Shown: positions 6,547-38,193 of the stretch, piece after piece
Numbering within the stretch: the first letter of the stretch is position 1
Layout of the letters: each line of letters begins with the position of its first letter
IMG/VR virus record: IMGVR_UViG_3300042402_002641
Coordinates: 62,001-126,000 of that record
Reading direction: 5' to 3' (one strand)
DNA length: 64,000 nucleotides
Position numbers and translations under genes: made by a program
Notes under the pieces: generated by a model
Told to the model about the DNA's origin: nothing
Seen by the model: the letters and a program-made list of their open reading frames with translations, nothing else
Databases searched by the model: none

Positions 6547-7143
6547 TGTATAGGCCCCGCTGCAATGGATTACACAGTGTGCATACATATGCGTTTGTAC
6601 ACATAAATGCTCAGTAAGTGTGATTTACTGACCCCCACAGTGCGTGTAGAGGCCGCTGCGCTGGCCGTGAGAGGCAGAATGGTGTGGTTCTGTGTGACAA
6701 AGTGCAATAAAGTGTGGAATTGTGTGACCATTTGAGCATAGCCTCTCCAACCACAGTGATCTCAAAAAATTTTTGCATGATTTCTAGTGTGGGACTCTGT
6801 GTTTTCGCACCGTTCGCCACCATTTTGTCACCAGATCCCACCGAGTCCCTGACCGCGTACGGTGAGTCTACGGTGGCCCCGCTGCGTGAGATTCATGTGC
6901 GCACTGTACTAAGCAGTGGGATCACAGCTATATACTAGTATGATCTCTACACTGGCTATGCTGCCTTTCATCTTCATACTCACACACATAGCTGTTCAAG
7001 GTGATTCATACACAGTGAGATACCAGGCTAGGATCTGTGTCTTCTGTTATCTTGCGATCGCTGTGGCATTTTGGCTATAGGCCCCGCTGCTAGATATACC
7101 AAAATGCATTGACAGTACAGGACTTTGACTGTATAATATACAC

Positions 7144-7461
7144 ATGCTTAAGAAAAAGCTGTTATCTAGGAGCAGAGAATCCGTGACATTACCAGATGAA
7201 AGATACCGTGCAGTGCGGCACACAGAACAGTTTCTTCAACGACTAGCGGCTGGGGAATATCCCCGTGTGGCCAAGGCAGTTCGTGATGAAGCTAGAGCAT
7301 TGCTGCGACACTATCCTAATGGTTATGACATGGATCGTGCAGCGCGAGCCTGTCCTGATGTGTTTGTGGAACGCTATGAAGATCTGCACAGATTCGTCTT
7401 GCAGGCCCGTCGACTAGCTCCCACTGACGGAGGGGAACAGCAGCAGGAGATCACAGACTAA
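7144..7461 (+). CDS. Hypothetical phage protein
   Basis: Follows TTGACA(7109)-17-TATAAT; TLPDERYRAV...LLRHYP. Confidence 0.65.
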   Translation: MLKKKLLSRSRESVTLPDERYRAVRHTEQFLQRLAAGEYPRVAKAVRDEARALLRHYPNGYDMDRAARACPDVFVERYEDLHRFVLQARRLAPTDGGEQQQEITD

Positions 7462-7472
7462 GCAACAGTTTA

Positions 7473-7550
<78 letters not shown>

Positions 7551-7570
7551 CAACGCAGCAGCACAGCAAT

Positions 7571-7646
7571 CTGACCGTAGTTCAGGGGATAGAACAACAG
7601 CCTTCTAAGCTGTGGGTCGCTGGTTCGATTCCAGCCGGTCAGGCCA
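7571..7646 (+). tRNA. tRNA-Arg(TCT), encoded CCA
   Basis: Acceptor CTGACCG/CGGTCAG, anticodon arm ACAGC-CTTCTAA-GCTGT, T arm GCTGG-TTCGATT-CCAGC. Confidence 0.92.
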
Positions 7647-7933
7647 TTACAGCAGCAACAGCAGCAGAGAGAACGCACAGTGTACCGGCATCCCAATCCC
7701 ATGGATCCTCTAGATCCCTTTAAACGTTGGTATCGCCAGCTATGGCCCCTGCAGCGTGTGGGAGTGTGGATCTGCGCAGCTGTAGTGGTGTGGGCACTGC
7801 TGCTGTGGGTCACCATCTAACAGCAGCAACAGCAGCAGGGGCAGAGCGCAGCGAGATATCTGAGGAACCCTAAGGGTTCAAGGGTCTTTACATTTTGGTT
7901 GACAGAATGGTGAAATGGTGCTATAATTATAAC

Positions 7934-14867: not shown

Positions 14868-15436
14868 TTGGAGTGCCAGGGGTTGTGGCTTTTCTGCCAC
14901 AGGCCCCGCTGCTTACGTGTGCGTGTAACCTATCGGTTGACATCTAGGCAGATTGGTGTTATAATATAGACATATTAACAGAGAAGGAGCGGTAATGATG
15001 GAACTGATTTTAGCATTCGTAGCAGGTATGATCGTAATGGACGTGATGTGGGCCTGGCGCATGGGCATCCCCCAGATGCTGTGGTATCGCTTCCGTAATC
15101 GCAACAACCCCCAACCTAACTTTGATCAGGAGTAATCATGATGAGTCATCTCGTAGCATTCTTCCTTGGAATCTTCGTGGCAACTGTGGGCATCACAGGT
15201 GTGGCCAGTGTGGCAGACAAGGGCGTTAATCAAGTTCAACAGGTAATGAAAGAGGCAGCTAAATGAGCAAGATGGCAGATCTCACATACGATATCGAGCA
15301 ACTGTACATTGAGGGCCATTCGCCTAGGATGATCTCAATCATGCTGGAGTGCCCCATTGAACAGGTTTATGGATGGTTAGAAGAAGTAGGCCTTGATCCC
15401 GAAGACTACAGCCCGCATGCCACTATAAATAGTTAG

Positions 15437-18300: not shown

Positions 18301-18367
18301 TCCGATTCGCTCCCGGTAATCAGCAACCTTGATAGAGACCCTACTAACACTAGGGTCTCTTTTTTTT
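18291..18367 (+). ncRNA. Candidate 3'-UTR sRNA copy 2: hairpin with loop AUUCGCUCC, then intrinsic terminator
   Basis: GGTTG/CAACC, CTGA/TCAG and CCG/CGG stems, loop 18305-18313; terminator AGAGACCCTA-N7-TAGGGTCTCT-T7. Confidence 0.6.
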
Positions 18368-18426
18368 GGTTGACATTTTGGCTAAAGTGCGTTATAATTG
18401 CTACTTACACACACAAGGAGCCCACA

Positions 18427-18678
18427 ATGTTTACAAACTGCATAGCCTACGCAAAGTTAGTTTACAACAAAAAACTTAACGCATACAAAATGCAGATTGC
18501 ATTTAATGTACACAAAAAGTTAGTAGGCACTAACTACAAATATTTGTTTCCTGTACAAAGCAAATGCAACTATGTTAGCGGGGACTTACTTGCAGAAAAT
18601 TTAGAAGCAGAAGTGCAACGCACTGTGGCTTTTGCACAACAAAACTTGCGTACAACACAAATTGTAATAGTAGACTAA
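18427..18678 (+). CDS. Early hypothetical protein (TC-depleted island)
   Basis: Promoter at 18370, AAGGAG RBS, ATG 18427. Confidence 0.7.
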   Translation: MFTNCIAYAKLVYNKKLNAYKMQIAFNVHKKLVGTNYKYLFPVQSKCNYVSGDLLAENLEAEVQRTVAFAQQNLRTTQIVIVD

Positions 18679-18763
18679 GTTGTAGGGCCTTTACAGCACA
18701 CACTTGCATTTTGGACAGGTGTGTGCTATAATTGTTTTTTAAACACAGCATTAGGAGCGAACT

Positions 18764-19135
18764 ATGCAAGCAACGACATTTAACGTAAGCGACAAGCTAA
18801 CACTGGTAAGCACAGACACAGACACAGACAGCGTTAGCACAACATACAACTGTAACGTAGAAGTGCAACTAGCAGGCGACAGCATATGGGACTGCGAGCT
18901 AGAGGCAGTTACAGTTACAAGCATACACATACACGAGAACTTTTGGGAAGACACAAGCACAGTACACATTGCAGTTTGCTACAACGTAGACGGTGTAGAC
19001 GGCAGTGAAGTAGAGGGCAGCTGGCGTATGTATACAGACAGCGGCTTTGAAGAGGCTGTTAGTGCTTTGCTAGGCACAGACGTTAGATTTACGGAGCAGG
19101 GAATGCAAGACGACGGCTTTGCGAGCATGGAATAA
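18764..19135 (+). CDS. Highly acidic early protein (TC-depleted island)
   Basis: AGGAGCGAA RBS; D/E-rich; YTDSGFE...FTEQGMQ. Confidence 0.75.
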   Translation: MQATTFNVSDKLTLVSTDTDTDSVSTTYNCNVEVQLAGDSIWDCELEAVTVTSIHIHENFWEDTSTVHIAVCYNVDGVDGSEVEGSWRMYTDSGFEEAVSALLGTDVRFTEQGMQDDGFASME

Positions 19136-19200
19136 AAACAACAGCACACTTGCATTTTGGATGTAAGTGTGCTATAATACATTTTTAAAGAAAGCACTAG

Positions 19201-19341
19201 ATGAAAACAGCAACTAAACAAAAAATTGACAGCTTAATGCTACAGCTACAAGACTTGTTAGAGGACGAGTACAGCGAACATGACGCTATACAGACAGCGT
19301 TTAACGACCTAGCTATTGCGCTAGACGATGTTGTAAATTAA
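19201..19341 (+). CDS. Small acidic helical protein (46 aa, TC-depleted island)
   Basis: MKTATKQKIDSLMLQLQDLLEDEYSEHDAIQTAFNDLAIALDDVVN; own promoter. Confidence 0.55.
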   Translation: MKTATKQKIDSLMLQLQDLLEDEYSEHDAIQTAFNDLAIALDDVVN

Positions 19342-19431
19342 CAACACAGGGGTGTAGGCCCCGCTGCTTAAGGGGTTGACGCAGCCCCCTTTTGGCAGTA
19401 TAATGAACACATACACACACAGGAGCACTCC

Positions 19432-19722
19432 ATGAACATCACCCAGATCAACTCAGCCATCATGCAAGGCCAATTCACCAACGATGAACTAACCTCTGTG
19501 ATCGATGCGGTCAAGTTTGCTCGAGCACGACTCAACAGAGAGGTCAAGAGCGGCCTGATGGTGGGAGACAATGTGGAGTTTACATCCAGCAAGACTGGAC
19601 GGGCCATGCGTGGGTTCGTAACCAAAGTAGCCATCAAGTATGTCACTGTGAACACGGGTGCAGGCCTTTGGCGAGTGCCGGCCAACATGCTGACTCGGGT
19701 AAAAGAGTCAGAGCTGGCGTAA
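19432..19722 (+). CDS. Early hypothetical protein (SH3-like C-terminus)
   Basis: VGDNVEF...GFVTKV..KYVTV...WRVPANML; promoter plus RBS. Confidence 0.7.
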   Translation: MNITQINSAIMQGQFTNDELTSVIDAVKFARARLNREVKSGLMVGDNVEFTSSKTGRAMRGFVTKVAIKYVTVNTGAGLWRVPANMLTRVKESELA

Positions 19723-19726
19723 ATAC

Positions 19727-20107
19727 ATGATGCTAGAACTTGTTATCGTATTCGCTCTGGGGTGGATCTTAGGCTGGAAGATCAATGATGCTCTAAGAAC
19801 CGCTGCCATCAAAGCCCTACTCAAAGAACTGGGAGTCACTGACCAGGATCTCCGGGCAGCCGCAGCTCGAAACGGCATTGAAATCTCAGCGGCCCCTGAC
19901 ACAGCAGCTGATGAAACTGTGGTGGAAGTCAAGCTGGAACAGCACGGGGGGCAGATCTTTGCTTACCGCAAGAGTGATGACACATTCTTGGCTCAGGGCA
20001 CAGACAGAGATTCTCTGATCGAGCGATTGAACCAGACCATGCGGCCCTGTAGGATCTTGATCGACAAAGAAGACGGCGCTGATCTGTTGCAGAAAAACAA
20101 CACCTAA
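19727..20107 (+). CDS. Membrane-anchored hypothetical protein
   Basis: N-terminal hydrophobic helix; TAAATA upstream. Confidence 0.65.
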   Translation: MMLELVIVFALGWILGWKINDALRTAAIKALLKELGVTDQDLRAAAARNGIEISAAPDTAADETVVEVKLEQHGGQIFAYRKSDDTFLAQGTDRDSLIERLNQTMRPCRILIDKEDGADLLQKNNT

Positions 20108-20147
20108 ATTGGTTGACAGTTTGGCAGTTCAGTGTTATAATACACAC

Positions 20148-20384
20148 ATGACACAAACACAAATAGACAACACCCTACAGTGGACCGGAGCAGCGGCCAT
20201 CATCGCCATGCACGTACTCAACGCAGCAGGCCCCGAGGCTTATCCCTGGAACATCATCGCAGCTTTCATCGGAACTGTTGCATTCCTTTCATGGACCATC
20301 CGTGTGAGAAACCTGCCGCAGTTCACGGTAAACGTGGTAGCATTAGCCATAGGCTTTGTAGGGTTATATCGAGCGTTTGGTTGA
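20148..20384 (+). CDS. Small multi-pass membrane protein
   Basis: Three hydrophobic segments; ATG 6 nt after TATAAT. Confidence 0.65.
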   Translation: MTQTQIDNTLQWTGAAAIIAMHVLNAAGPEAYPWNIIAAFIGTVAFLSWTIRVRNLPQFTVNVVALAIGFVGLYRAFG

Positions 20385-20416
20385 CACATTGGCGTTTTGG
20401 TGTTACAATAGATACA

Positions 20417-20630
20417 TAGACAGTTAGGAAAGAGCAAAAGGTTACCTACACCGTTAGGTACTTAGAGGGTTAGGACAGTGGCGACGGTCACGCTCAATCT
20501 AGGTACATGAAACAGGGCAGTGATGCTCGGAGAAGCGGCGGATCTTGTAGGCAGTAATGACGGTACAAGCCCTTGTGGAGACGGTCCCTGGGGTAGACTA
20601 CATGTTCCTTTGCTTTTTCCCAACTGTCTA
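20417..20630 (+). ncRNA. Unidentified structured ncRNA (~215 nt)
   Basis: Dedicated promoter TTGACA(20381)-17-TACAAT; ~24-bp closing helix 20417-20441/20607-20630; several internal helices; no RBS-led ORF. Confidence 0.65.
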
Positions 20631-20702
20631 ACAGCCAGGTTGACAACTAGCCAAATTAGTTGTATAATAGACACATACAAACAAACATTAGGAGCGAACC
20701 CA

Positions 20703-26051: not shown

Positions 26052-26750
26052 ATGTTTGGAACAAATTACACAGGCGGCGCTGTCCTGAATTATAGAAGCG
26101 CCGAAGAAATCAACTCGGCCATGGGCAGAGTCTACGGCCACATGAGTCTAGCAGTTATTGTCAGCATGTTGGTAAGTTACTGGATCGGTACCAGTCCAGA
26201 ACTTCTTCAGTTCTTTTTCACAGGAGTGTTGAAGTGGATCGTGATATTCGCACCATTGGCTGCGGTGTTTGCAGTCAGTTGGATGTTGGCTACAAACCCC
26301 AGTAAATCTGTAGCACAGTTGTTGCTGCATGGGTTTGCTGCTTTGATGGGACTGAGTTTCTCTATGATCTTTGCGGTGTTTAATATGGGATCGATTGTGT
26401 CAGCATTTATGGGTGCAGCTGTCTTGTTTGCTGTGATGAGCGGCTACGGTTATTTTACCAAGACCAGTCTCGACAGCCTAGGAAAATTCCTGTTTGTGGG
26501 ATTGATAGCTGTGATAATTGCCAGTGTGATTAATATCTTTATTGGATCAACTGTGATGCAGATGGTGATCTCATCCCTAGCGATTCTGGTATTTCTAGGA
26601 CTTACTGCCTACGACACACAGCAGATTCGTCAACAACTGATGGTAGAAACTTCACCCGCTGCGGAAGTCCGAGGAGCACTGAGTCTTTACATGGACTTTA
26701 TCAATCTGTTCCTAAATCTTCTACAGTTGTTTGGGGATCGTAAAGAATGA
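26052..26750 (+). CDS. Bax inhibitor-1/YccA family membrane protein
   Basis: About seven TM segments; TAYDTQ, ALSLYMDFINLF. Confidence 0.92.
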   Translation: MFGTNYTGGAVLNYRSAEEINSAMGRVYGHMSLAVIVSMLVSYWIGTSPELLQFFFTGVLKWIVIFAPLAAVFAVSWMLATNPSKSVAQLLLHGFAALMGLSFSMIFAVFNMGSIVSAFMGAAVLFAVMSGYGYFTKTSLDSLGKFLFVGLIAVIIASVINIFIGSTVMQMVISSLAILVFLGLTAYDTQQIRQQLMVETSPAAEVRGALSLYMDFINLFLNLLQLFGDRKE

Positions 26751-28270
26751 ATATAACCATAGTTGGTGGTGGTACGGCTGCGTGGACCGCAGCCGCATTT
26801 CTGATCCGCAATCGACCGCAACACACCTATACCATTATCGAAAGTTCCAGCATCAAGACCATTGGTGTAGGCGAAGCTGCAACAGGTATGCTCAGTGGTT
26901 TGATACAGCAGTTAGGTATCGATAAATGGGAGTTTATGCAGAGAACAGATGCCTTGCCTAAGTTGGCGATAGATTTTCAAAATTGGAGAGGCGACGGCGG
27001 TAGATATCTTCATCCCATCGACAGCAGTTTTTCTTCTAACAGTTTCATAGATTACACTGTTTATCATTCAGTGGCTGCAAATCAAAGTCTTTCCTCAACC
27101 AGCCGAAACAACATGCTGGTTGATTTGGGTCTCAGCAATATCGCATGGATCAACAATCAATTTGAAGAAATGGGCAGTCTCACATGGGTAGTTGACCCTG
27201 CAAAGCTGGCAGACCTCCTTAGAGAATATTGTATCAGCGAAAATGCCATAGTGATAGATACCACAGTAGATGAAGTTGTGATAGAAAATGGATACGTAAC
27301 TGGACTTGTAACTGACCTCGGAACTCTTACTGCAGATCTGTTTATTGACTGCACTGGCAGTGCCCGAGTTCTGTCTTCTAAATTAAACTCCAAATGGATC
27401 AGCTATGAAAAATATCTGCCAGTGAACAAGGCCATACCGTTTCGTCTAGAATACGATACCGCAGATCGCGAATCCACAGTGACCTGCAGAGCCATGAACA
27501 ACGGATGGATGTGGGCAGCTCATACTAGACACAGAATCGGTAGAGGCTATGTGTACAGCGATCGATTTGCTTCGACTGAAGATATTCTACAAGAACTCGA
27601 AGAACATTTTCAACAAAAAGTAATACCAATTAAAACCATTGATTTTGATACCGGAGTTTGTGAATCATCATTTAACGCCAATGTGTTAACGTTGGGACTA
27701 GGTGCTGGGTTTCTTGAACCCATGCAGGCTACCAGCATACATGCTAGCCTAGTGCAAATCAGCGACTGGGCCAATCTATGTCTCAGCGGCAGTGTTGAAG
27801 CCACTGTGGATCCCGTTGTTGCCGCAGTTTATAATTCAAGAGTTAACAATTTATACAAGGACATGATGGAATTTGTGGCCATACACTATGCCACAGATAG
27901 ACAAGACACAAAATTTTGGAAATTTGTCAAGGAGGAATTAGATCGTCCTGATAAGGTCAAAGAAATGATTGCTCTAGCCAAGAAAAGACTAATTAGAAAT
28001 GATGATTTTGCACAGTATCTAGGATCAGCCGGAGCTCCGTTATGGATCTATTCAATGGCTGGACTAGGACTGTTTGACCCAGAAGTATGCAGGCGTGTTC
28101 TGACAGAATACAATTACAATTTTGATCATATCCAGGGAATCAAACAGGCACATCTTGAAGAAATTTTAAAATATAAAAATCAAATCTTTACACCTACAGA
28201 TCTAAATAATTTTTTAAAAAATAGTGTAAAAATCAAAGATGGTAATTTTGAATTGAAAAAACATGATTGA
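26747..28270 (+). CDS. Tryptophan-halogenase-family flavoprotein
   Basis: VGGGTAAW, IGVGEA, K in DALPKLAIDF, DLFIDCTG, GWMW, GFLEPMQATSI. Confidence 0.88.
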   Translation: MNITIVGGGTAAWTAAAFLIRNRPQHTYTIIESSSIKTIGVGEAATGMLSGLIQQLGIDKWEFMQRTDALPKLAIDFQNWRGDGGRYLHPIDSSFSSNSFIDYTVYHSVAANQSLSSTSRNNMLVDLGLSNIAWINNQFEEMGSLTWVVDPAKLADLLREYCISENAIVIDTTVDEVVIENGYVTGLVTDLGTLTADLFIDCTGSARVLSSKLNSKWISYEKYLPVNKAIPFRLEYDTADRESTVTCRAMNNGWMWAAHTRHRIGRGYVYSDRFASTEDILQELEEHFQQKVIPIKTIDFDTGVCESSFNANVLTLGLGAGFLEPMQATSIHASLVQISDWANLCLSGSVEATVDPVVAAVYNSRVNNLYKDMMEFVAIHYATDRQDTKFWKFVKEELDRPDKVKEMIALAKKRLIRNDDFAQYLGSAGAPLWIYSMAGLGLFDPEVCRRVLTEYNYNFDHIQGIKQAHLEEILKYKNQIFTPTDLNNFLKNSVKIKDGNFELKKHD

Positions 28271-28868
28271 TTATAATAAAGGCATTCATCCTCAGAGTGG
28301 GATTACCTATACTGTAGAAAAAGACATAGTAATTACTCCTTTTTGGACCGAGGAGTTTTGTAAAGAACTTGTTGATCTTGCAGAAAGTAACTGTGACAGA
28401 TTCTCAGGTCATCAACAAAAAAATGTAGATGGATCTGCAATGGGCTACGATGCCCTTTATTTTTCTAATCTAAGTTTTTATCTGTTTGAAGATTATACCA
28501 AACACTATGCCAAAGATCTATTTCCAATTATAAAAAAAGTTTGGCCTTATACCAGAATCACAGGCTGGCAAAGTCCTTTTATCTTGAAGTACAGCAACAA
28601 TGGTAAACGTCATCTTAGTCCCCATCATGATCTAAGTGAATTGTCTTGGAATATAAAATTGAATGATAATTACAGTGGGGCTGAATTGCGATTTCCAAGA
28701 CAGGGAATAGATAATAAAGATATTCCAATAGGGCATATGATGCTTTGGCCTAGCACCGTAACCCACTATCATGAAGTTCCTAACCTTATTTCTGGAGTAA
28801 AATACAGTGTTACTGGGTGGACCTGGCCTAGTGGAGCAGAGCATTGGGCTGGAATAAAAAATGTCTAA
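28263..28868 (+). CDS. 2OG-Fe(II) oxygenase (prolyl/lysyl hydroxylase-like)
   Basis: LSPHHD (HxD), LNDNYSGAELRF, THYHEV, GVKYS. Confidence 0.85.
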   Translation: MIDYNKGIHPQSGITYTVEKDIVITPFWTEEFCKELVDLAESNCDRFSGHQQKNVDGSAMGYDALYFSNLSFYLFEDYTKHYAKDLFPIIKKVWPYTRITGWQSPFILKYSNNGKRHLSPHHDLSELSWNIKLNDNYSGAELRFPRQGIDNKDIPIGHMMLWPSTVTHYHEVPNLISGVKYSVTGWTWPSGAEHWAGIKNV

Positions 28869-29490
28869 AATTATAAAAAAAGAAATATTAAGATTGTTTC
28901 CTAGTCTAGTGTTCAAGGGATCAATAGATGATCACACAGTTATCGATCGTGCCAGCGAACACGTGAATACCTTAAAAAAATCTAAGATTGGATCGCTCAC
29001 TAGAGAAAAATTTACCACCCAAGATAATTTGCATGAATTACCTCAGTTTACGGAATTGACTGAAATTATCCTAGAAGAAACCAGTCAGGTATTAGACTTT
29101 TATGCGGTAGTCAGAGAAAGTCATTACATTACCAATATGTGGGCGCACAGCACTTCCAACGGACATAGACACGCTACACACATACATCCTAACAGCTACT
29201 TGTCCGGTATTGTTTATCTCAAAACACCTGCTAATTGTGGTAACACAATATTCATTGATCCAAGAAACGGATCAACTATGATTCATCCAGACTTCAGCGA
29301 ACAGAACTATTTTAACATGGATTCATTTATACATAGTCCCGAAAAAGGAGTAATACTTATTTGGAATAGCTGGTTGCCTCACACAGTTGATCAAAGTTCT
29401 GTTCTAACTGACGAAGAACGTGTGGTTATTGCATTTAATATTATGATAAAAGGTTCTGTTCAACGTAAGAGTGAACAGATTGTTTTCTAA
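28861..29490 (+). CDS. 2OG-Fe(II) oxygenase (TIGR02466-like)
   Basis: HIHPNSYLSGIVY, WNSWLPHTV, RVVIAFN. Confidence 0.85.
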   Translation: MSKIIKKEILRLFPSLVFKGSIDDHTVIDRASEHVNTLKKSKIGSLTREKFTTQDNLHELPQFTELTEIILEETSQVLDFYAVVRESHYITNMWAHSTSNGHRHATHIHPNSYLSGIVYLKTPANCGNTIFIDPRNGSTMIHPDFSEQNYFNMDSFIHSPEKGVILIWNSWLPHTVDQSSVLTDEERVVIAFNIMIKGSVQRKSEQIVF

Positions 29491-30206
29491 TCTAAGACGT
29501 TTTGTTGAGCAGTTTCTAAACTAAGTTCTTTATCTTCTAATTCTCTAATCTTCTCAGAAATTTTATCAATAAGGCCTAGGTTGCGCAGAATCTTAAACAC
29601 AAGATTTTCTACACTCCATTCTCCTGCACGATCCAGTCCGGCCTTGCGCATTTCTGTGATACGTTCTTTGACTCTACGAAGACGTTCAAGATCTTGACTG
29701 AGTAAGGCAGTTTCCATGTCGTGGACCATGGAATCTTTTTTGCGTTCTACTGCACTGTCATCTACTTCCGGTTTGATTTTCTTAGGTTCAACCAGCCATT
29801 GATCTTTAGCTATGCTAAACACACCAGTGCTGTGGTGTTCTTCCTGCTCGCCCTGTACATAACATTCCACAGGCAGTCCTCGCACAGTGATCGTATGCTG
29901 TTCGGCCCAGAGTGCCTTTTTGGCGTTGTAGAGTTCACGTTCTGCGTCAGTGACTGCGCCTTTAACGATTAGATGAAGGTCTAGATCTGAGTGCTGAGTC
30001 CAGGTATAATTGGCATTTGATCCAGTTATGGTATAGTCTACAACCGGCAGATCTATGCCTATGAATTTTTCAAAGGCCTCTGCTATATCCTGCAGTTTTG
30101 TGCTGACTTCTAGATCCAGTTCTCCGTTGTGCCAGAGTTTTGGATTCAATCGGCGATTTACCGTGACCAGCTGTGATGATGATTCTTCAAGTTCTCTTAG
30201 ACGCAT
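29487..30206 (-). CDS. Nucleotidyltransferase-domain protein
   Basis: GS...DxD motif (TGSNANYTW..SDLDLH); TAAATA-N4-ATG. Confidence 0.7.
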   Translation of the reverse strand: MRLRELEESSSQLVTVNRRLNPKLWHNGELDLEVSTKLQDIAEAFEKFIGIDLPVVDYTITGSNANYTWTQHSDLDLHLIVKGAVTDAERELYNAKKALWAEQHTITVRGLPVECYVQGEQEEHHSTGVFSIAKDQWLVEPKKIKPEVDDSAVERKKDSMVHDMETALLSQDLERLRRVKERITEMRKAGLDRAGEWSVENLVFKILRNLGLIDKISEKIRELEDKELSLETAQQNVLD

Positions 30207-30209
30207 CCA

Positions 30210-30446
30210 TTATTTAGCCCACATTAAGTGGTAAGCAGTGATCAACTCGGTGTTATAGAATTCTGCTACTAACCTGCAGTACATATCTGTACGTTCTAAG
30301 ATCAGTTGACACTGCGAGCGATCCTGCTTTAACAGCCAATTAGTGTGATCTACTCCTATGGTTTTATGCACCTTGGGCCAATCAATTTCAATGTTTTCGC
30401 CCTCGTTGGGCAGCCACTTTAACAGCTCAATCTTAGATGTCTTCAT
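30210..30446 (-). CDS. Small hypothetical protein
   Basis: 78-aa ORF coupled to helicase. Confidence 0.55.
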   Translation of the reverse strand: MKTSKIELLKWLPNEGENIEIDWPKVHKTIGVDHTNWLLKQDRSQCQLILERTDMYCRLVAEFYNTELITAYHLMWAK

Positions 30447-31869
30447 CTATGTTCATACCATTTAGAATCTCACGTAGTTTTGTGCCTTCTACATTGGCTC
30501 GTACCTTGGCCACAGGAGCTCCTTGCGCAGGATCAATTTCACCTGTAACAGGATCTATTCTCTGCAGGTCTGTCTTGCGTTTGATCTGTTCAATGATACT
30601 GGTGCTGCCGCGACTGGCGTTGTTTTGTGTGTCTTGTTCATCTTCTGGTAGATCTGAAATCTTTAGACTGTCTATATTAAATTCTAGATCAATCTTTTGA
30701 CCTACACCTGAACTGGATCTTGTCTTCATTAATTGCAGTTGATAGCGGCCACGCTCACGCATGGCTCTAGATGTAAAGATACCAAACACATTATCTGCAG
30801 TTTGGATCTTACTCAATCCGCCTGAGATATGGCTGTGATCGAATTCCACTTCTTCTACGGCACCTCGATTTAACTGTGCCGCGGTCACACACAGCACCTG
30901 TTTTTCCATAGCCAAGTTGCGTATTTCTTCAGATACATATTTGTCTTTGACGAAGAGATTCTCCGCGGAGATCTTTTTACCTATAGGCATCAGCAAGTCC
31001 ATGTAATCTATCAACAACACGTCGATGGGTTTACCGCATTTGATTTCATATTCTTTGACATAGGCTCGTATGTCATTGACTGTTTTACCCGAAGGCATAT
31101 ATTTAATCTGCAGCTGTCCCGCCTTCTTGCCGATCATCTTGACCTTCATTTCTACATCATCGAGATCACGGAAAATCTCTCTGGTGGGTACTCCAGTGAT
31201 CATAGAATCAATCCGCATACTGACTAGTGCTTCTGAAAGTTCCAGAGTCAGATAAACCACGTTAAGCCCCTGCAGAGCCCAATTCACTCCCAGATTGGCC
31301 AAGAACAGACTTTTGCCTGCACCCGATCCCCCTGCAAAAATATTCAGCTCGCCTCGGTTCATACCGCCAAATAGCTTACGATCCATGCAGGGCCAACCTG
31401 TAGAGATCTGACCGTTCTTGTCTTTGAGACCCATAAGCCTGCCTCGGGGATCTTCAAAGTAGTCTGTGCCCATGTCTCTGGCCAGTCCTATCTGTACTGC
31501 AGTCTTGATCAGTGTTTCCACTTCACCGTAGTTATGTTTTTCTAATAGATCTGCAGACGCAATGATAGCACGTTCGATGGCTTTATGACGTGTGAATGAT
31601 TCAAACTCATCCATGAGCCATTCTAGATGTCCATCTTTGACTATATCTGGTCTTTTGAGATCTAGTCTGCATGATGCATTAACCATGTCATATTCTGGCA
31701 GCACTGTGTACTGTTTGGCATATTCATTAATGAACTCTGCGGCGTCCTGCAGTTTGCGATCAAATAGGCTGTGATCAAATATACCTTGACAGCGTACAAA
31801 TACTTCTGCATCTGACAGCATTAGTTCAAGATATAATTTTTGTACTTCGTATCCGTAGTCTTTTATCAT
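30433..31869 (-). CDS. Replicative DnaB-like helicase (T4 gp41-like)
   Basis: GGSGAGKS, LELSE, LIDYMDL, TAAQLNR, MKTRSS. Confidence 0.93.
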   Translation of the reverse strand: MIKDYGYEVQKLYLELMLSDAEVFVRCQGIFDHSLFDRKLQDAAEFINEYAKQYTVLPEYDMVNASCRLDLKRPDIVKDGHLEWLMDEFESFTRHKAIERAIIASADLLEKHNYGEVETLIKTAVQIGLARDMGTDYFEDPRGRLMGLKDKNGQISTGWPCMDRKLFGGMNRGELNIFAGGSGAGKSLFLANLGVNWALQGLNVVYLTLELSEALVSMRIDSMITGVPTREIFRDLDDVEMKVKMIGKKAGQLQIKYMPSGKTVNDIRAYVKEYEIKCGKPIDVLLIDYMDLLMPIGKKISAENLFVKDKYVSEEIRNLAMEKQVLCVTAAQLNRGAVEEVEFDHSHISGGLSKIQTADNVFGIFTSRAMRERGRYQLQLMKTRSSSGVGQKIDLEFNIDSLKISDLPEDEQDTQNNASRGSTSIIEQIKRKTDLQRIDPVTGEIDPAQGAPVAKVRANVEGTKLREILNGMNIDEDI

Positions 31870-31875
31870 AGTTTA

Positions 31876-32823
31876 TTATACACTGATCTCTAGGTGTTTT
31901 GCAACACCAAAATTATAGTCCCACACACGTTGTTTTGTATGATATAGCACTGCACCTATACTAGAACTAGGATCTCCAGGATTAGGTAAGGTCCATCGAT
32001 ATTTAAACATGGGCTCAACTATTTTTTTATTGGCCAAGCTATTCATAGCACAACCACCCATATAGACTAATGTATCTGTGCCCACAGCAGATCTAGCCAT
32101 AGTCATTATCAATGAAATTTGTTCTTCAAACACACGCTGCACTGCGGCGGCAATGTCCCATCGATCTCGATCGCTGGAAATTGGTTCATTCCAATTTGTT
32201 ACCCCTCGATGAAAGTTATAGGTCACTGCTAACACACCACCGAAATAAGATCTAATTTTATTATAGTATCTGTTGGAATCACCTAGCACACTGTCCTGTT
32301 GCAGTTTATATTCTTCTAGTATAGGTTGGTAACCAATTAATTTTGTAAATGCAGAATAAAACAATCCAAGACTATGAGGATAATCTCGTCCCCAGATTTT
32401 TTTTAATTCTCCGTGCCGGCCTTCCCAGATGCTTGCGCATTCAAATTCTCCTATGGCATCTAGCACCACGATTGCACAATGATCAAAAGGACTGGTATAA
32501 TACCCTGCAGCTGCATGACTAGCATGATGCGGAGTATATCTTAGATCGGCGTACTGCGTTTTGATTTCTTTGATATAAGTTGACGGTATGTCACTAAAAT
32601 CAAAAACTCTGTCCCATTGACCTGCAGTAAATTGTCGTAACTTTTTCAACCAAGGACGTTCGTACCAAAATATTGTGCTAGGACCGCCGTAGTTAAATGC
32701 ACTATGAATGATCTTTGTATCTAATCGATCACTGACTGAATGTTCAAGCATCGATAGTCTGCCATCAGAAAAAACAGCCAGACTACTGCCATGATTAAGA
32801 GCGTTAATTCCCCAAGTAATCAT
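31876..32823 (-). CDS. Carbamoyltransferase N-terminal (Kae1-like) domain, NodU/CmcH family
   Basis: HHASHAA, VLDAIGE, PHSLGLFYS, GGCAMNS, PGDPSSSIGA. Confidence 0.85.
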   Translation of the reverse strand: MITWGINALNHGSSLAVFSDGRLSMLEHSVSDRLDTKIIHSAFNYGGPSTIFWYERPWLKKLRQFTAGQWDRVFDFSDIPSTYIKEIKTQYADLRYTPHHASHAAAGYYTSPFDHCAIVVLDAIGEFECASIWEGRHGELKKIWGRDYPHSLGLFYSAFTKLIGYQPILEEYKLQQDSVLGDSNRYYNKIRSYFGGVLAVTYNFHRGVTNWNEPISSDRDRWDIAAAVQRVFEEQISLIMTMARSAVGTDTLVYMGGCAMNSLANKKIVEPMFKYRWTLPNPGDPSSSIGAVLYHTKQRVWDYNFGVAKHLEISV

Positions 32824-32916
32824 TTGTAGATAAACGGATCACGTTTTCTCAACTCAGCAAGTCTTTTCTTAAATCGCCTGTGTTCTTGAAACTTGGTCCA
32901 AGGCCACAGCAGTATT

Positions 32917-33948
32917 TCAACTATTTTCTTTATCATATTCTAACCTCTGTAATTTATGTTCTTGTTGTTGTTTAGCCATTTTAATTTTTATCTGGCCTCG
33001 CTGTGCAGTTTTAATAGCATCTACTATCACAAATAATTGACCGTAACGCTGTACAGCATCTGCTACATCTTTAATCTCCGGATCCCAATTTGGCATTGCT
33101 ATGCTCCAATCTAGTTCAGCTGCACGATCAAATAATATTAGACCCGCAGCGTCTTGATCCGGTATCACAATAACTTCTGCTCCTAGACTATTGATTATCC
33201 TTGCCTGTTGTTCAGCGATTTCATTGGTTAGTAGTGCAACACCCCCCACCGCTAGAGCGTCGAACGGTCCTTCACAGACAAGTATATACTTCTGTTCTTC
33301 CAGCTGACGATCAAAGTTGAATACAAAATGCGGATGTTGATCTGATAGATATTTTGGCTTTCCGTCGATGATTTTACGAGCAGTATTGCCTACTATGTGT
33401 CCCTGCCATCTAAAAGGCAAAATAACACGATTTTCGTATCCTGGGCTAGGACTCCAGTAAAAATCGCCGTTGTAGGGGTCGTAGCCGCGGTTTACAACAT
33501 AAGAAATCACCGGTTCTAACAAAATAGACACTTCTTTGAAATATTCGCTGTTTACCCAGTCTAACAAGGGCATTGCACCCTCCGGCAGTTCTTTATCTGT
33601 AAATGCGACCTGTATTATAGACGGTGATGGACGATAAGCTTCGCCTTCGGTTTTCATCGCTTCAAACACTAATTCTTTCACAGTATCTTCACTAGCACCC
33701 ATCCAACGACTCAGCGTTTTCATCTTTTCTCCAAACGGAGAACCGGGTTGCCAACCAGTAGTAAATTTACAGTTAAAACAGTTATAGACTATGCTGTCGC
33801 CATCAAAACGAATACCAGCTCGTTTGCGTGTATCCGATTTATGTCCTCTATGATGACAGCAGGGTGCGTTAAACGACGTCCAACCGGAAGGACTGTGTTT
33901 GGCACGAGGAGGTAATAGAGTACTGAACTTGTCCACAACGAGAGTCAT
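32917..33948 (-). CDS. DNA primase (T4 gp61-like)
   Basis: Zn finger (PCC..YNCFNC), TOPRIM CEGPFDA and PDQD, KDVAD. Confidence 0.9.
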   Translation of the reverse strand: MTLVVDKFSTLLPPRAKHSPSGWTSFNAPCCHHRGHKSDTRKRAGIRFDGDSIVYNCFNCKFTTGWQPGSPFGEKMKTLSRWMGASEDTVKELVFEAMKTEGEAYRPSPSIIQVAFTDKELPEGAMPLLDWVNSEYFKEVSILLEPVISYVVNRGYDPYNGDFYWSPSPGYENRVILPFRWQGHIVGNTARKIIDGKPKYLSDQHPHFVFNFDRQLEEQKYILVCEGPFDALAVGGVALLTNEIAEQQARIINSLGAEVIVIPDQDAAGLILFDRAAELDWSIAMPNWDPEIKDVADAVQRYGQLFVIVDAIKTAQRGQIKIKMAKQQQEHKLQRLEYDKENS

Positions 33949-33960
33949 ACATACAGTATA

Positions 33961-34788
33961 CTATCTGTAAAGGATCTTGTCAACTGTTCCTGTGTTTGCA
34001 GTGGTTGGTACATGCTTGATTCTAAACCAATTGTACTTGCCCACGACGTTTTTGTATTTGGCAGTGGTTAAATCTACGGTAGCCACAGTGGCCCATTTGG
34101 ATTCTCTTGGAGTAGCACCCTGAGTGTCTAGACTGCCCTCGATGGTGACTGTGCCTTGATAGTTGTTTGTGGTATAAAATTGGAACGTGTGTGTGGAATT
34201 AGCGGTATTCAGCGTAGGTCTTGCATCTATGATTTGGCTGACGAAAAACTTAGGGGTCTCATCTCCCTGAGTGAATGGGTTGGTATAATTAAACGTATCT
34301 ACTAGCACACTGGGTTCTACATCACCATATACATCACCACTGATCTCTAGTGTACCTACTGTATCATACTGTGCATCTACGTACATAGGCGTCTTGGATG
34401 TGACCCTGTAATCTGTGGAATCTACGGTAGTACGGATTTCTTTAATAATGCTGTAGTTATAGAACCCATTGTCAAAGTCCATAAGTTCAGTCTCAGTAAG
34501 AGTCACAGTGACCTTGCCTGTGGCAAGATCCATGGCTGTGAAATCTTTCTGCATGACTAAATCTTTGGTGTCTCGGCTAACGAGGTTAAATACCAAAGTA
34601 CTACCAACGATGTTACTAGCCTTTTGATCTGCGTTACGAACCTGGATGTCTATGCGATTATCAACACCACGAAATATTTTTAGATTGCGATTATACACTT
34701 TACGATACCTCTCTGTTGACCAAGCGTCCATGGAACTGGTAAAAACATCTAACTTATTTGAGTATAAATAAACTGGATTAAATTGCAT
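33961..34788 (-). CDS. Putative virion structural protein
   Basis: Beta-rich T/V composition; upstream TAAATA. Confidence 0.5.
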   Translation of the reverse strand: MQFNPVYLYSNKLDVFTSSMDAWSTERYRKVYNRNLKIFRGVDNRIDIQVRNADQKASNIVGSTLVFNLVSRDTKDLVMQKDFTAMDLATGKVTVTLTETELMDFDNGFYNYSIIKEIRTTVDSTDYRVTSKTPMYVDAQYDTVGTLEISGDVYGDVEPSVLVDTFNYTNPFTQGDETPKFFVSQIIDARPTLNTANSTHTFQFYTTNNYQGTVTIEGSLDTQGATPRESKWATVATVDLTTAKYKNVVGKYNWFRIKHVPTTANTGTVDKILYR

Positions 34789-34819
34789 ACATTAACGGAC
34801 CTTTAGCATTATTTATCGA

Positions 34820-35191
34820 ATGAGAATATCAACTAACCTACAAGAAAACTTTCCGTTCATCAGCGTTATCAACCACGTAAATCACGAATATGTTGGTATA
34901 ATCATCAACCAAGATGCACAGGTTACCAGTATCTACGACTACAGTAGTATTCGCACCGATCTCGAAAAACAGCAGTTTTTAGAATTCGGCGAAACTTGGT
35001 GGTGGGAATCAAATAGACAGATTCCTATCAATATCTTTCTAGCTAAAGAATTATCAATTTTCCGTTACGTAGTTAAGACCTTTGCTACCAAAGACGTCAA
35101 AGTGCTGTTTGGTCCCTGCACCAGTCTCAATGACATCATAGTCAAACGAGTCAAGCGTAAATCAATCACACTGATTAGAAAGATCTCTTAA
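34820..35191 (+). CDS. Hypothetical phage protein
   Basis: WWWESNRQIPINIFL. Confidence 0.65.
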   Translation: MRISTNLQENFPFISVINHVNHEYVGIIINQDAQVTSIYDYSSIRTDLEKQQFLEFGETWWWESNRQIPINIFLAKELSIFRYVVKTFATKDVKVLFGPCTSLNDIIVKRVKRKSITLIRKIS

Positions 35192-35948
35192 ATCGATCCA
35201 ATAATATTTTTTGTGTTTCTTCATTTTTTTTAGCAGTCAACGACCATATTTTACATGATAGGTCTTTGTTTCCTAGAAACTTTTCTATTTGAGTTAAGTT
35301 TAAGAAATCGATAGATGTTGTATCTTCTGATTGCATAGCTATAGATATACACACTTGATCTAATGCATACATATTTGCTCGTTCATACTTAGGCATTTCC
35401 TCGTGAATACTTTCAAAGTTAATTTGTGACAATCTAGAATAATATTCTTCGATAATCTTCCGAAGAAAATCTTTCCTATCTTTAGATATTAATAAAAAAT
35501 TTGCACCTGTTTGTTTCCACAGATTGTCTTTGTACTCAGGATAATATAAAACACCTAATTTATAATTTTGCAGTGATATTTTTTCATTGAATATGATATC
35601 TGCATCTGTAACATATGCAAGATCTATTAAATTTTTAGAAAACAAATAATCTGTAATGAAGTATCTTGAAGTGAAATAATAACTTTTCAATTTATAAAAA
35701 TTAACATCGGTATTTATAACTTCACAAGAGATAGAAAGATCAATAGACAACTGTAAATCTAAAACTTTGCTTAAAAATTCATCCGAGACATTGATAAAAT
35801 GAATATGGACATCTTGATTAAGTTTATCACAAGATAATAGATTATAAAATCCGTAGTTTTGAAAATAGTTTTGGTCACACTGGAAAACTACAACATTTTT
35901 TGAAATAGGCTTTTTAATTATCTGAATATTCTTAAAGAATTCGTGCAT
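35175..35948 (-). CDS. Putative GT-A glycosyltransferase
   Basis: YFTSRY, DxD (TDADIIF), LDQ; AT-rich. Confidence 0.55.
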   Translation of the reverse strand: MHEFFKNIQIIKKPISKNVVVFQCDQNYFQNYGFYNLLSCDKLNQDVHIHFINVSDEFLSKVLDLQLSIDLSISCEVINTDVNFYKLKSYYFTSRYFITDYLFSKNLIDLAYVTDADIIFNEKISLQNYKLGVLYYPEYKDNLWKQTGANFLLISKDRKDFLRKIIEEYYSRLSQINFESIHEEMPKYERANMYALDQVCISIAMQSEDTTSIDFLNLTQIEKFLGNKDLSCKIWSLTAKKNEETQKILLDRFKRSF

Positions 35949-36504
35949 GCTTGGCCCAGTCACGATACTCTATGATGTTAAAGTCGATATCATTGTTTAC
36001 ATACCAGGTTTCAAAATGACATTCGCCATACCATGATTTTCTTCTCCGCATTGTGAATACATTATTAACTGCGATTTTATAACCTTTGGATGTAAGAAAA
36101 TCAGTCGCATTATCAATCGTTTTTACAAAGGCTCTTTCTTCTCTCCAGTACTCGTCGTGTTCAAATGTAATACAATCAAACTCTATTCCTTGATTGATTA
36201 TGTTCTTTAATGCTAACAAAGTAAGTTCTGGAGGGTTGATATCGCAACTGAGATATCCGTATCTTAGAATATTTTGATACTTAAAATTTACAGCATCTTG
36301 ATAATAGCATTTATTTCTTCGTTTGTAGAGCCATTCTTTTTCAAATTTATTGTCTAATTCTATACTGAATCCGGTCCAGGCGTTTTCTTCGAGTAGCAAC
36401 GTGTTGCTATATTTAGAAGGATCGGCTGCTCCTATTTCGATGTATGAATTACGTTTCGAAACTTGAAGTGCAAATATATCTTGTCCTACTTGAGAATAGT
36501 GCAT
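35932..36504 (-). CDS. FkbM-like methyltransferase
   Basis: YSQVGQD, YIEIGA, SNTLLLE..WTGFSIE, ITFEHD. Confidence 0.75.
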   Translation of the reverse strand: MHYSQVGQDIFALQVSKRNSYIEIGAADPSKYSNTLLLEENAWTGFSIELDNKFEKEWLYKRRNKCYYQDAVNFKYQNILRYGYLSCDINPPELTLLALKNIINQGIEFDCITFEHDEYWREERAFVKTIDNATDFLTSKGYKIAVNNVFTMRRRKSWYGECHFETWYVNNDIDFNIIEYRDWAKHARIL

Positions 36505-36505
36505 G

Positions 36506-37084
36506 TTAATAATATCCGTAGCTGATGCTTTCACAGATTAAATTCATCTGCACTACGATGGCTACAGCATAGGCAGTAGCGTGACTTTTCTTAAAGTAGT
36601 ACTCGTCAGTCTCTGGTTTCGTCCAAACTTCTTTCATTATCTCCGTCCAAGTCCGGCCAATCAAATGCCTCTTGGCTGGCCGTATCATGGCAAGGACCGC
36701 AGCTAATTGTTCCACGGAAGTAGGGCAACATTGTTTCAGAATTGCACCATGGCCATTCAAATGAAATAACAGATCGACGAACTCTTGTTGTTGAAGTAGA
36801 TCCCATAGAGGCTCCTGATTCATTAATTCCACTAGATGCGCTTCATCGCGAACACCTTTGTAGATACCAACATTTAAAAAATCTATCTTGAAATATCCTT
36901 GCGTTTCTGCTTGATCATAGGGCACAGCACAGACATTGACCTCAGCATTTACTGGAACTGCGTGAAAATACACACCGGTATTGTGTTTGACCAATTGACC
37001 GCTATCTACACGACTGGCTCTGATATGTCGGAACAGATCAAGTGCAGAATCTCTATCAACGAAGTCTATGTCAATGTCAGGCAT
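36506..37084 (-). CDS. Minimal DNA polymerase III alpha (DnaE)-like catalytic fragment
   Basis: MPDIDIDF, KHNTGVYF, GYFKIDFL, LAMIRP, FKKSHATAYA. Confidence 0.8.
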   Translation of the reverse strand: MPDIDIDFVDRDSALDLFRHIRASRVDSGQLVKHNTGVYFHAVPVNAEVNVCAVPYDQAETQGYFKIDFLNVGIYKGVRDEAHLVELMNQEPLWDLLQQQEFVDLLFHLNGHGAILKQCCPTSVEQLAAVLAMIRPAKRHLIGRTWTEIMKEVWTKPETDEYYFKKSHATAYAVAIVVQMNLICESISYGYY

Positions 37085-37085
37085 G

Positions 37086-37286
37086 TTAGTTCCAAATAAA
37101 TTCTAGATCACCCTGTGCGATCTTACGCCACTGACTAGGCCCCGGAGTTGCGTACGGAGTGTATACTTCGCCGGTCTCTTGATCAATCAGCATGTATTTT
37201 TGCGGGCACTTGGTCTTGATAGTGAGTATCACTGGGATTTCCAGTTCCTCGACTTGTTCTCCGTTTTTTAAAGTTCTAGGCATCAA
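37086..37286 (-). CDS. Small hypothetical protein
   Basis: TKCPQKYMLIDQETGEVY. Confidence 0.55.
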   Translation of the reverse strand: MMPRTLKNGEQVEELEIPVILTIKTKCPQKYMLIDQETGEVYTPYATPGPSQWRKIAQGDLEFIWN

Positions 37287-37510
37287 TGCATCCTTGTGGT
37301 TTCAAACAACAGCAATGGCAATGTTTCTGCAAGAAATTCTGCGTAAGCTTCAGCATCTTCTACATCTGCAAAATTAGTAAACTTTACATAAACAGAAGGT
37401 TCTTCATCACTGGTGCACATCACTTCTATCTCAATATCTTCGTCTGAAATAAAAGTTTCATTCTCAGCTAGTTCTTCCGGAATTTCTTCTACCTTGAGTT
37501 TTTTTGGCAT
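37283..37510 (-). CDS. Small acidic protein
   Basis: Coupled ORF. Confidence 0.6.
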   Translation of the reverse strand: MPKKLKVEEIPEELAENETFISDEDIEIEVMCTSDEEPSVYVKFTNFADVEDAEAYAEFLAETLPLLLFETTRMH

Positions 37511-38193
37511 TACAGTATCTTAGCCTCCTTGATGACATCACGTACCAGTTCTAGGTCTGCAGGCAATTCTTTAAATCTACGCAGCCAGAATTGTGGATCG
37601 ATCACTGGGCCAACTATGGCTAACTGTTCGTCATTCATCTTTTGCAGCATGGTCTTGCCTTCTCGAGTATTTAACAGGATCCAAGGAGAGATCAATCCCT
37701 CCTTGATATCATGTGTGGCACGGTTGAGATTCACATAGGCAAAATAGTGTTCCCAAGTACTGTTATTCTTTTCACTCCAGGCCATCATGTTTTGTATGGT
37801 TCTTTGTATGGCTCCGTCGGCTGGTTCGATCTTGATCAATTCGCTGATGTATGAATCGTATAACTCATCACGACACCAATGATCCAGTTTGACTCCGCTC
37901 TTGATCACAAAGTCAACGAATCTTTCAGGATAGATGGGCGCAGTATTGATCATGAAACTGCCAAACTTTACAAATGCAGTATAGTACGGACTGGCAGCAA
38001 ATTCGTCAAAGGTCTTGGTGCCTTTGGATTTTTGTGTGAGATCGTAGAATCGTTGAAAGGTGATTAATCCCATCTGTACATGTCGTTCATTTTGTCCGAG
38101 ATGACGACGTTTCTGTTCGCAGACATGCACAAACAGAGTCTTTTCCTTGGCAAATAGTTTACTGCAATATTCGCACTTAAAGTTTAAGTCCAT
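37510..38193 (-). CDS. C2H2-like zinc finger hypothetical protein
   Basis: FKCEYCSKLF..EKTLFVHVC. Confidence 0.7.
   Translation of the reverse strand: MDLNFKCEYCSKLFAKEKTLFVHVCEQKRRHLGQNERHVQMGLITFQRFYDLTQKSKGTKTFDEFAASPYYTAFVKFGSFMINTAPIYPERFVDFVIKSGVKLDHWCRDELYDSYISELIKIEPADGAIQRTIQNMMAWSEKNNSTWEHYFAYVNLNRATHDIKEGLISPWILLNTREGKTMLQKMNDEQLAIVGPVIDPQFWLRRFKELPADLELVRDVIKEAKIL

Follow-up and report, generated by a model that had tools for sequence, protein, structure and literature searches.

Erasure of YC dinucleotides from the sense strand of a phage early-gene cassette, and its possible basis in an RNA-targeting effector

The tract at 18361-19428 on the + strand of a 64,000-nt stretch of phage DNA (the window, in which all positions are given unless a related locus is named) lies within the 280,019-bp viral record IMGVR_UViG_3300042402_002641, which belongs to a freshwater jumbo phage and is estimated to be 79% complete. 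It is an early-gene cassette with three small open reading frames (ORFs), ORF1 to ORF3, and its sense strand is almost entirely purged of the dinucleotide 5'-YC-3', where Y is either pyrimidine. The purge is maintained in deeply diverged homologous loci and, where a cassette or a single gene has been inverted, stays with the coding strand. It is tentatively proposed that the cassette mRNAs may be sequence-immune to a single-hit, single-strand, YC-specific RNA effector of host or phage origin.

A single TC is found on the + strand of the tract (observed/expected ratio, o/e, 0.02), at 18549 in the TTT|CCT Phe-Pro junction of ORF1, against 55.5 expected from the + strand of the surrounding early region; CC is present 13 times (o/e 0.31) against 47.4 expected on this same baseline, and none lies between 18688 and 19308, hence none in ORF2. 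The corresponding Poisson probabilities are 4e-23 for at most one TC and 4e-9 for at most 13 CC. The sense strand carries 58 GA (o/e 0.71) and 44 GG, so the depletion is strand-specific; the o/e of other dinucleotides is 1.61 for TT, 1.60 for AC and 1.71 for GC. None of the 16 dinucleotides is missing anywhere in the record over a stretch as long as those of TC (880 bp) and CC (620 bp) in this tract; the next longest gap measures 325 bp. The original prediction, made from the window, had described one TC where dozens were expected, scarce CC that is absent from the second ORF, serine encoded by AGY alone, and a strand-specific bias with GA present that runs through three genes, codon junctions and intergenic DNA; all of this is borne out, with 16/16 Ser codons being AGY and with junctions, all three codon phases and untranslated regions (UTRs) purged as well. 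Its description of two products as very acidic also agrees with the isoelectric points (pI) of ORF2 and ORF3, ORF1 being basic (Table 1). The only other long tract in the record is free of GR (R being a purine) and lies at genome 185476-185632; this is a Lys/Glu/Ala-rich stretch inside a large protein, and it was rejected as a second cassette.

The absence of TC and CC exceeds what is expected from amino-acid and codon composition. When ORF1, ORF2 and ORF3 were recoded with the codon usage of their neighbours, the mean TC counts over 5000 draws were 11.8, 16.6 and 6.4 with minima of 4, 6 and 1; the observed counts of 1, 0 and 0 were never reached in this control, which had been named beforehand as a check. 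The original prediction had also allowed for a donor genome that is globally TC-poor; with a TC o/e of 1.02 in the window, the phage genome is normal for TC. Chance and composition are ruled out as causes by the Poisson probabilities, the record-wide ranking of gaps and the recoding control.

The unit that is avoided was defined by pooling the strictly delimited cores of cassettes at 37 related loci (40.4 kb in all). In these cores TC has an o/e of 0.032 and CC of 0.088, AC (1.61) and GC (1.76) are enriched, and residual YC is followed by A in 13% of cases, vs 52% for RC. The avoided unit is 5'-YC, that is TC and CC together, and avoidance is strictest for YCA; the earlier description of TC as the avoided unit was too narrow, as CC is purged too. 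The codons ACC, GCC, GTC, ATC, TTC, CTC and every TCN codon make up 0-2% of their families in cassettes and CCN codons are at or near zero, whereas the NRC codons AAC, GAC, TAC, CAC, TGC, AGC and GGC are kept or raised. Proline accounts for 14 of 10,865 cassette codons, none of the 14 being CCA, vs 3.7% in flanking genes, and for about 0.1-0.3% of the residues of cassette proteins. From flanks to cassettes, ACA rises from 0.35 to 0.63 of Thr codons and GCA from 0.35 to 0.59 of Ala codons, ACT falls from 0.31 to 0.25 and GCT from 0.30 to 0.23, and Ser is shifted to AGY; since the lost codons are replaced mainly by A-ending and not T-ending ones, C-to-T decay is disfavoured. Residual YC occurs in every codon phase, and the purge reaches beyond the codons to junctions, UTRs and intergenic sequence, which excludes causes that depend on tRNA, codons or the ribosome; a tRNA- or codon-level cause was rejected on these grounds.

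Homologues of ORF2, the cassette's anchor gene, occur with 37-86% identity at 54 related loci (numbered with the prefix L), on IMG/VR contigs that reach 400 kb. At about 46 of the 54 the homologue has no TC and no CC, and these homologues carry 22-40 GA and 13-27 GG. In a maximum-likelihood tree of ORF2 members without YC are found throughout the family; those with YC (L045, L050, L053 and L057) are scattered, which takes about four changes, and the purge was lost independently a few times. Exact zero YC held through deep divergence indicates that each new YC site is selected against, and such maintenance is what is expected for a single-hit effector and not for a cooperative binder. The expectation that homologues would keep the depletion thus holds down to 37% identity, and selection, rather than chance or ancestry, is supported by a purge kept under deep divergence. 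The tracts measure 0.4-2.8 kb and contain 1-10 small ORFs, which belong to more than 20 protein families and vary in their order; L036 has 6 TC and 8 CC over 10 genes and 2.8 kb, and L047 has 2 TC and 2 CC in 2.3 kb. The purge is a property of the cassette locus and not of one gene.

The purge also tracks the coding strand when a cassette or gene is inverted. In the minus-strand cassette L039 6430-7277, the promoters of which are also on the minus strand, the + strand has 4 GA+GG where 58 are expected and carries 31 TC+CC; two homologous genes in opposite orientation, L047 3933-4277 (+) and L039 6515-6866 (-), both lack YC on their respective sense strands. Replication, packaging, end resection and other causes bound to a fixed strand of the genome are thereby excluded. 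The tract is sharply bounded, by the terminator upstream and by the closing hairpins, and the flanking early genes are normal in YC. In the tract of the window the last normal TCs, at 18356 and 18358, fall within the terminator of the upstream gene, which forms the upstream edge, and TC is back at 19429, the downstream edge; in L033 and L037 the first promoters have YC in their spacers and the tract starts past their -10 element.

These observations bear on the view that YC is not under direct selection at all, the tract being an accident, a donor signature, or the product of transcription-associated mutation or of avoidance of a protospacer adjacent motif (PAM), a restriction site or ultraviolet (UV) photoproducts. 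Some type I CRISPR systems use CC or TTC as their PAM, TC and CC are (6-4) photoproduct sites, and TT is enriched (o/e 1.3-1.6), all of which would agree with such a view; the conservation over deep divergence with independent losses, the sharp edges at transcription-unit boundaries, the A-ending replacement codons with removal of proline and a genome that is not TC-poor overall speak against it, and it is regarded as extremely improbable. PAM or restriction-site avoidance was rejected, as both strands would need to be purged; UV-photoproduct avoidance was rejected because the template strand matters yet keeps normal YC, and because TT, the main dimer site, is enriched.

Most cassette genes have their own sigma70-type promoter, with TTGACA or TTGCAT, 17 nt and a TG-extended TATAAT, and the -35 hexamer is enclosed by an 8-16-bp inverted repeat; the hairpin folds have z of -1.9 to -4.4. 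The arms of the repeat co-vary among loci and promoters (for example a GCGC-type vs a CACAC-type stem) with no YC on either arm. In the internal promoters the -35 hexamer sits in the hairpin loop and the 3' arm reaches the extended -10 (18695-18732 and 19143-19178 in the window; also in L013, L036, L047 and L039), and in some loci the repeat is palindromic, so that TTGCAA is present on both strands; the promoter hairpin could stabilise RNA 3' ends, form a cruciform or serve in recombination as a site. The spacers of internal cassette promoters are YC-free, whereas similarly built promoters in the flanks carry YC in theirs. The promoter type of P1 was found again in 47 viral contigs. Thirty-eight promoters were also sampled independently, with the promoter motif as the sole criterion; downstream of them the median density is 1.6 YC per 100 nt, and some promoters of this type, at cassette ends, drive genes with normal YC (L109, L084, L105 and L094). 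The purge thus belongs to particular genes and not to a promoter class, an expression time or a level of transcriptional exposure.

According to the reading favoured here, the tract would be an early-gene cassette resembling the PeSL cassettes of T4-type phages, with a transcribed sense strand purged of UC and CC at the RNA level. Cassette mRNAs would lack the site of a ribosome-independent, single-strand-specific effector, one hit of which would inactivate a message; the candidates are endoribonucleases and CmdT-type enzymes that modify RNA, and the effector would come either from the host, as a toxin or an enzyme of abortive infection, or from the phage, as its own enzyme of host shutoff. 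With the effector active, host mRNAs and other phage mRNAs would be hit while the small cassette proteins, presumed to be takeover or counter-defence factors, would still be made. Sequence immunity of this kind is considered quite possible; RNA as the level of action, a YC-specific enzyme and the roles of the proteins are inferred from the pattern of avoidance. In the pooled cores YC density is 2.6/kb in coding and 10.9/kb in intergenic sequence, and coding sequence that is about four times cleaner fits an agent whose hit counts inside a message. Loss of RNA, in contrast to lesions in DNA, would be recoverable after the effector is neutralised. The genes are strand- and transcript-specific in their purge, small, strongly promoted, early and placed in a hypervariable island, which agrees with the original picture of genes that have to stay expressible under attack. 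Of the effector that it had pictured, expression surviving a single-strand reader of pyrimidine-C stands as the best fit, and the named candidates, DarT and a deaminase, are unsupported.

Several results weigh against an RNA effector of this type. The phage record has T4-type genes (a Terminase_6N large terminase, RecA/UvsX-like and DnaB-like), and its nearest cultured relative is the Pseudomonas jumbo phage PA5oct (54% terminase identity), which has T4-like core genes and falls outside Tquatrovirinae; no YC-free tract is found in 1-50 kb of PA5oct, its long terminal repeat with many small early genes. Assembled contigs from the freshwater metatranscriptome library X1 cover the cassette with a word depth of 24-102, like other early genes, and are compatible with its transcription; they show no cleavage ends or editing, and DNA carry-over is possible. 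Searches of the 79%-complete record gave no match to barnase/T1 RNases, deaminases or C5 or N6/N4 methyltransferases, and none to TGT/DpdA or QueC (positive controls, 14/14 genomes). Residual YC is not enriched in predicted paired RNA (pairing probability 0.57 vs 0.56-0.61) or in the spacer between the Shine-Dalgarno sequence and ATG, and sheltering of residual YC by RNA stems or by the initiating ribosome is thus not supported. Finally, a few cassette genes avoid GA and GG, which a single YC-reading RNA effector does not explain.

L043 4561-4911 (+) has 2 GA on its sense strand, both in Asp codons, and no GG where about 34 GA+GG are expected, together with 8 YC; a second purge, of purine dinucleotides, may lie behind this, and it recalls the GA specificity of CmdT. 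Two genes of L039, at 6940-7182 (-) and 7437-7688 (+), are without TC, CC, GA and GG and are therefore YC-free on both strands, and their products are small, basic and without Gly, Asp, Glu and Pro. Either a second RNA effector reads GR or both DNA strands matter in these genes. A wider proposal, held still more tentatively than sequence immunity itself, is that freshwater bacteria or these jumbo phages wield a YC-reading effector of single-stranded RNA, that the clade answers with YC-erased early messages at the cost of proline-free proteins, and that the GA/GG purge would mark a second, CmdT-like effector.

The identity of the avoided dinucleotide also suggests evasion of the termination factor Rho: a YC-free transcript could not load Rho, and the cassette would be transcribed to its end even if translation were uncoupled. 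Loading of Rho is cooperative over about 60-80 nt with several YC, and untranslated RNA is the loading site. Rho is nearly universal, which would explain conservation over a clade with probably diverse hosts, and the C that cassettes retain stands solely in RC contexts. The ligand of every primary binding cleft on Rho is a 5'-YC dinucleotide, and the specificity class, with U or C 5', C 3' and purines excluded, is an exact match (PMC12360218). A rut-free transcript is indeed without YC ligands; the constraint would also be graded and strongest in untranslated sequence, and the cassettes display neither property. The last one or two YC of a translated 370-nt ORF would be near-neutral for Rho, yet there are none in about 46 diverged homologues, and the fourfold higher density of YC in intergenic sequence is the opposite of what is predicted. 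The cleft gives no basis for the extra avoidance of A after YC, and neighbouring early genes with the same promoters have normal YC; Rho evasion is considered unlikely.

Strand specificity that tracks transcription and the presence of genes that are YC-free on both strands, for which one DNA reader is simpler than two RNA readers, also agree with an effector of single-stranded DNA (ssDNA) whose target would be the non-template strand, laid bare by transcription bubbles or R-loops in these very strongly transcribed genes. Such an effector could be a YC-preferring cytosine deaminase, a dC-specific ssDNA endonuclease or a DarT-type ADP-ribosyltransferase. Deaminases of the APOBEC type have hot spots at TCA and CCA, and T4 endonuclease IV prefers 5'-TCA. 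The strict avoidance of YCA as the worst site recalls APOBEC-type deaminases (PMC7449416) as well as this endonuclease. Flanking early genes with the same promoters are nonetheless normal in YC; lesions there would be equally harmful, and a purge of 1-3 kb would not be protective. An ssDNA effector predicts no difference between coding and intergenic sequence, contrary to the densities given above. The footprint of a deaminase is not found, as NYC codons went chiefly to A-ending codons with no gain of T-ending ones and equally transcribed flanks that share the promoter type are normal; DarT is disfavoured in that a four-base TNTC-type site would not require the loss of every TC and CC, which are avoided here in any context. 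No deaminase match was found in the phage record, nor any to the dCMP deaminase or thymidylate-synthase families, and the lack of a DarT match is uninformative, as the same search, being without a positive control, matched none of the control genomes. Action on ssDNA is accordingly judged improbable.

In a further alternative it is the template strand that is protected: a bulky modification of G at GA and GG, for example 7-deazaguanine, in virion DNA would hinder the unmodified host RNA polymerase, and the first genes to be transcribed from parental DNA would keep a GR-free template. The 7-deazaguanine of phage CAjan is placed at a GA/GGC motif. By construction, neither GA nor GG occurs on the template strand of the cassette, a block at a single site would be enough, which reproduces the single-hit logic, and intergenic sites 5' of the next promoter would be harmless. 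The neighbouring early genes with the same promoters would, in turn, be blocked, and a modification of this kind does not predict that YCA is especially avoided on the sense strand; no match to TGT/DpdA, QueC, a thymidylate-synthase-type hydroxymethylase or a C5 or N6/N4 methyltransferase was found in the 280-kb record (79% complete). Template protection is regarded as very unlikely, and the RNA effector remains the reading preferred here.

Table 1. Features of the cassette and its borders (positions in the window)
Feature	Position	Strand	Details
Intrinsic terminator of upstream gene	18335-18368	+	9-bp arms 18335-18343/18351-18359; T8 run; RNA fold z = -4.35
Promoter P1	18370-18398	+	TTGACA, 17-nt spacer without YC, TATAAT; TG-extended -10
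ORF1	18427-18678	+	83 aa; pI 9.4; start ATG 18427; homologues L058-L068
Promoter P2	18695-18732	+	TTGCAT 18704, TATAAT 18727; 9-bp inverted repeat 18695-18703/18719-18727, arms without YC
ORF2	18764-19135	+	123 aa; pI 4.05; 0 TC, 0 CC, no proline; anchor gene of cassette
Promoter P3	19143-19178	+	TTGCAT 19150, TATAAT 19173; 8-bp inverted repeat 19143-19150/19166-19173; fold z = -2.94
ORF3	19201-19341	+	46 aa; pI 4.05; one CC (19308), no TC; family 7, in 5 loci
Closing GC-rich hairpins and short T run	19349-19399	+	GGCCCCGCTG at 19357-19366; most residual CC of tract
First gene past cassette	19432-19722	+	96 aa; normal YC content

The features of the locus are collected in Table 1; the gene callers of public assemblies give the same three ORFs of 83, 123 and 46 aa. 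ORF1 holds three residual YC, one in a GCC codon at 18446 that recurs at the same place in two homologues and two in TTT|CCT at 18549-18551. The closing hairpins overlap the start of the promoter of the next gene (19376-19404) and contain the 10-mer GGCCCCGCTG, which is found five times in the window vs 0.04 expected, each time on the + strand (6553-6562, 6875-6884, 7080-7089, 14902-14911 and 19357-19366). In diverged relatives GGCCCCGCTG lies 15-60 nt 3' of the last cassette gene (L013 5620, L027 5409, L043 5755, L048 1859, L055 4424, L056 5751, L058 6387 and L062 6449), and triplet clusters are also found further upstream. GGCCCCGCTG is an early-region element that is both conserved and strand-specific, and it could belong to a terminator or serve in processing or antitermination. 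The three-copy cluster in the early region of the window is adjoined by a tRNA-Met (CAT) at 7473-7550 and a tRNA-Arg (TCT) at 7571-7646, both on the + strand, in surroundings that are otherwise poor in ORFs. A AGGGTTAT-like motif follows many cassette stop codons (L013 4690-4700, L036 4086-4096 and L062 5262-5272), and outside cassettes the terminator 3' arm GTAGGGTCTTTTT stands at the equivalent place; the AGGGTTAT-like motif looks like a terminator stripped of TC and of the T-run, which would favour read-through.

The locus is hypervariable, as seen from strain variants in X1 that skip the cassette by joining 18357 to 20407 and 18375 to 20662 and from IMG/VR contigs that end at the cassette (L011, L012, L015, L025, L029, L048 and L051). 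The cassette-skipping variants also omit about 1 kb of downstream genes and have short replacement sequences at the joints. Elsewhere in the window, the region at about 26700-42000 includes a segment of low GC content (0.27-0.44, from about 28000) and encodes a Bax1-I family membrane protein, a Trp-halogenase-like flavin adenine dinucleotide enzyme, two 2-oxoglutarate-Fe(II) oxygenases, a protein with a carbamoyltransferase N-terminal domain and a DegT/DnrJ/EryC1 sugar aminotransferase; these look like acquired genes for the modification of sugars or secondary metabolites.

Thirteen cassette proteins were searched and none matches a Pfam or PHROG family; an ESM Atlas search for cassette proteins gave no lead. 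The AlphaFold model of ORF2 has a predicted local distance difference test score of 88 and no fold match in PDB or AFDB, and its predicted fold appears to be common to two unnamed viral models, M1HTR4 and A0A1J0F9Z3 (template modelling score 0.61-0.66). ORF2 homologues share a conserved C-terminal motif around TEQGMQDDG, and a tblastn search of deposited phages gave no match. The ORF2 domain is represented by 882 clusters at 50% identity (E <= 1e-3) and is also found within proteins of 250-990 aa without a Pfam domain; ten multidomain carriers were checked, and none has a Pfam match. The label of counter-defence genes, given in the original prediction, is retained for the cassette as a presumptive one.

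The purge is clade-conserved and strong enough to strip proline from the encoded proteins, and it provides a natural example of selection at the nucleotide level overriding selection at the protein level. If the proposed reading is true, it would predict the specificity (YC, with YCA the worst) of an enzyme acting on phage or host RNA, and it would single out about 20 small ORFan families as needed while that enzyme acts. A compositional screen for such gene sets would then be available for any virus; dinucleotide-free tracts would reveal both protected counter-defence genes and the specificity of RNA-targeting immune enzymes.

Motif avoidance is known for restriction sites, for the sites of MazF and MqsR, and for the targets of APOBEC and ZAP; the phenomenon described here is a new, extreme variant of it. 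A literature search gave no earlier description of a near-total, strand-specific erasure of a dinucleotide over kilobases. Phages are known to neutralise Rho by proteins or RNA elements (lambda N/Q, P4 Psu); unlike these strategies, the cassette has the ligand itself removed from the transcript, and more strictly in coding than in untranslated sequence. The organization of the cassette is closest to PeSL, the mobile cassettes of stem-loop and early promoter in hyperplastic regions of T4-type phages, in the abstracts of which no dinucleotide purge is mentioned (PMC2839356, PMC4122927). As in PeSL, small ORFan genes each have a stem-loop and a sigma70-type early promoter and gene content varies among relatives; unlike in PeSL, as outlined in those abstracts, the -35 hexamer lies within the stem-loop, neither arm of which contains YC.

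The footprint of APOBEC3 on viral genomes is partial. It consists of TC depletion in papillomaviruses and other human viruses (PMC7449416, PMC4999249), and resembles the present case in being a viral depletion of pyrimidine-C that is read by a single-strand-specific host enzyme. The purge described here differs in that it is near-total over 0.5-2.8 kb, bound to the coding strand and without a C-to-T codon signature. By its logic, a dinucleotide read on mRNA, CmdTAC is the nearest known type of effector; in this anti-phage defence CmdT ADP-ribosylates GA in single-stranded mRNA and blocks translation, and the text of the paper, as searched, does not mention a purged set of phage genes (PMC11618068). 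The specificity of CmdT is for GA, which is present in most cassette genes.

Transcripts poor in GCU escape the toxin RNase MqsR. ACA-less mRNAs escape MazF (PMC9102682, PMC5408214), and RNases of the MazF family can have sites that are nearly dinucleotides, U/GN (PMC13107127). Along with CmdT, both MazF cases are precedents for an effect at the RNA level. As with ACA-less mRNAs, a short motif is missing from the sense strand of certain genes, and in the MazF case those messages persist while a single-strand RNase destroys others. The cassettes differ from the MazF and MqsR cases in that the motif is the degenerate dinucleotide YC, which falls at about 1 in 9 positions, so that its removal reshapes codon use and the amino-acid alphabet; they are also natural, phage-borne and clade-conserved, and the purge extends over whole multi-gene transcription units.

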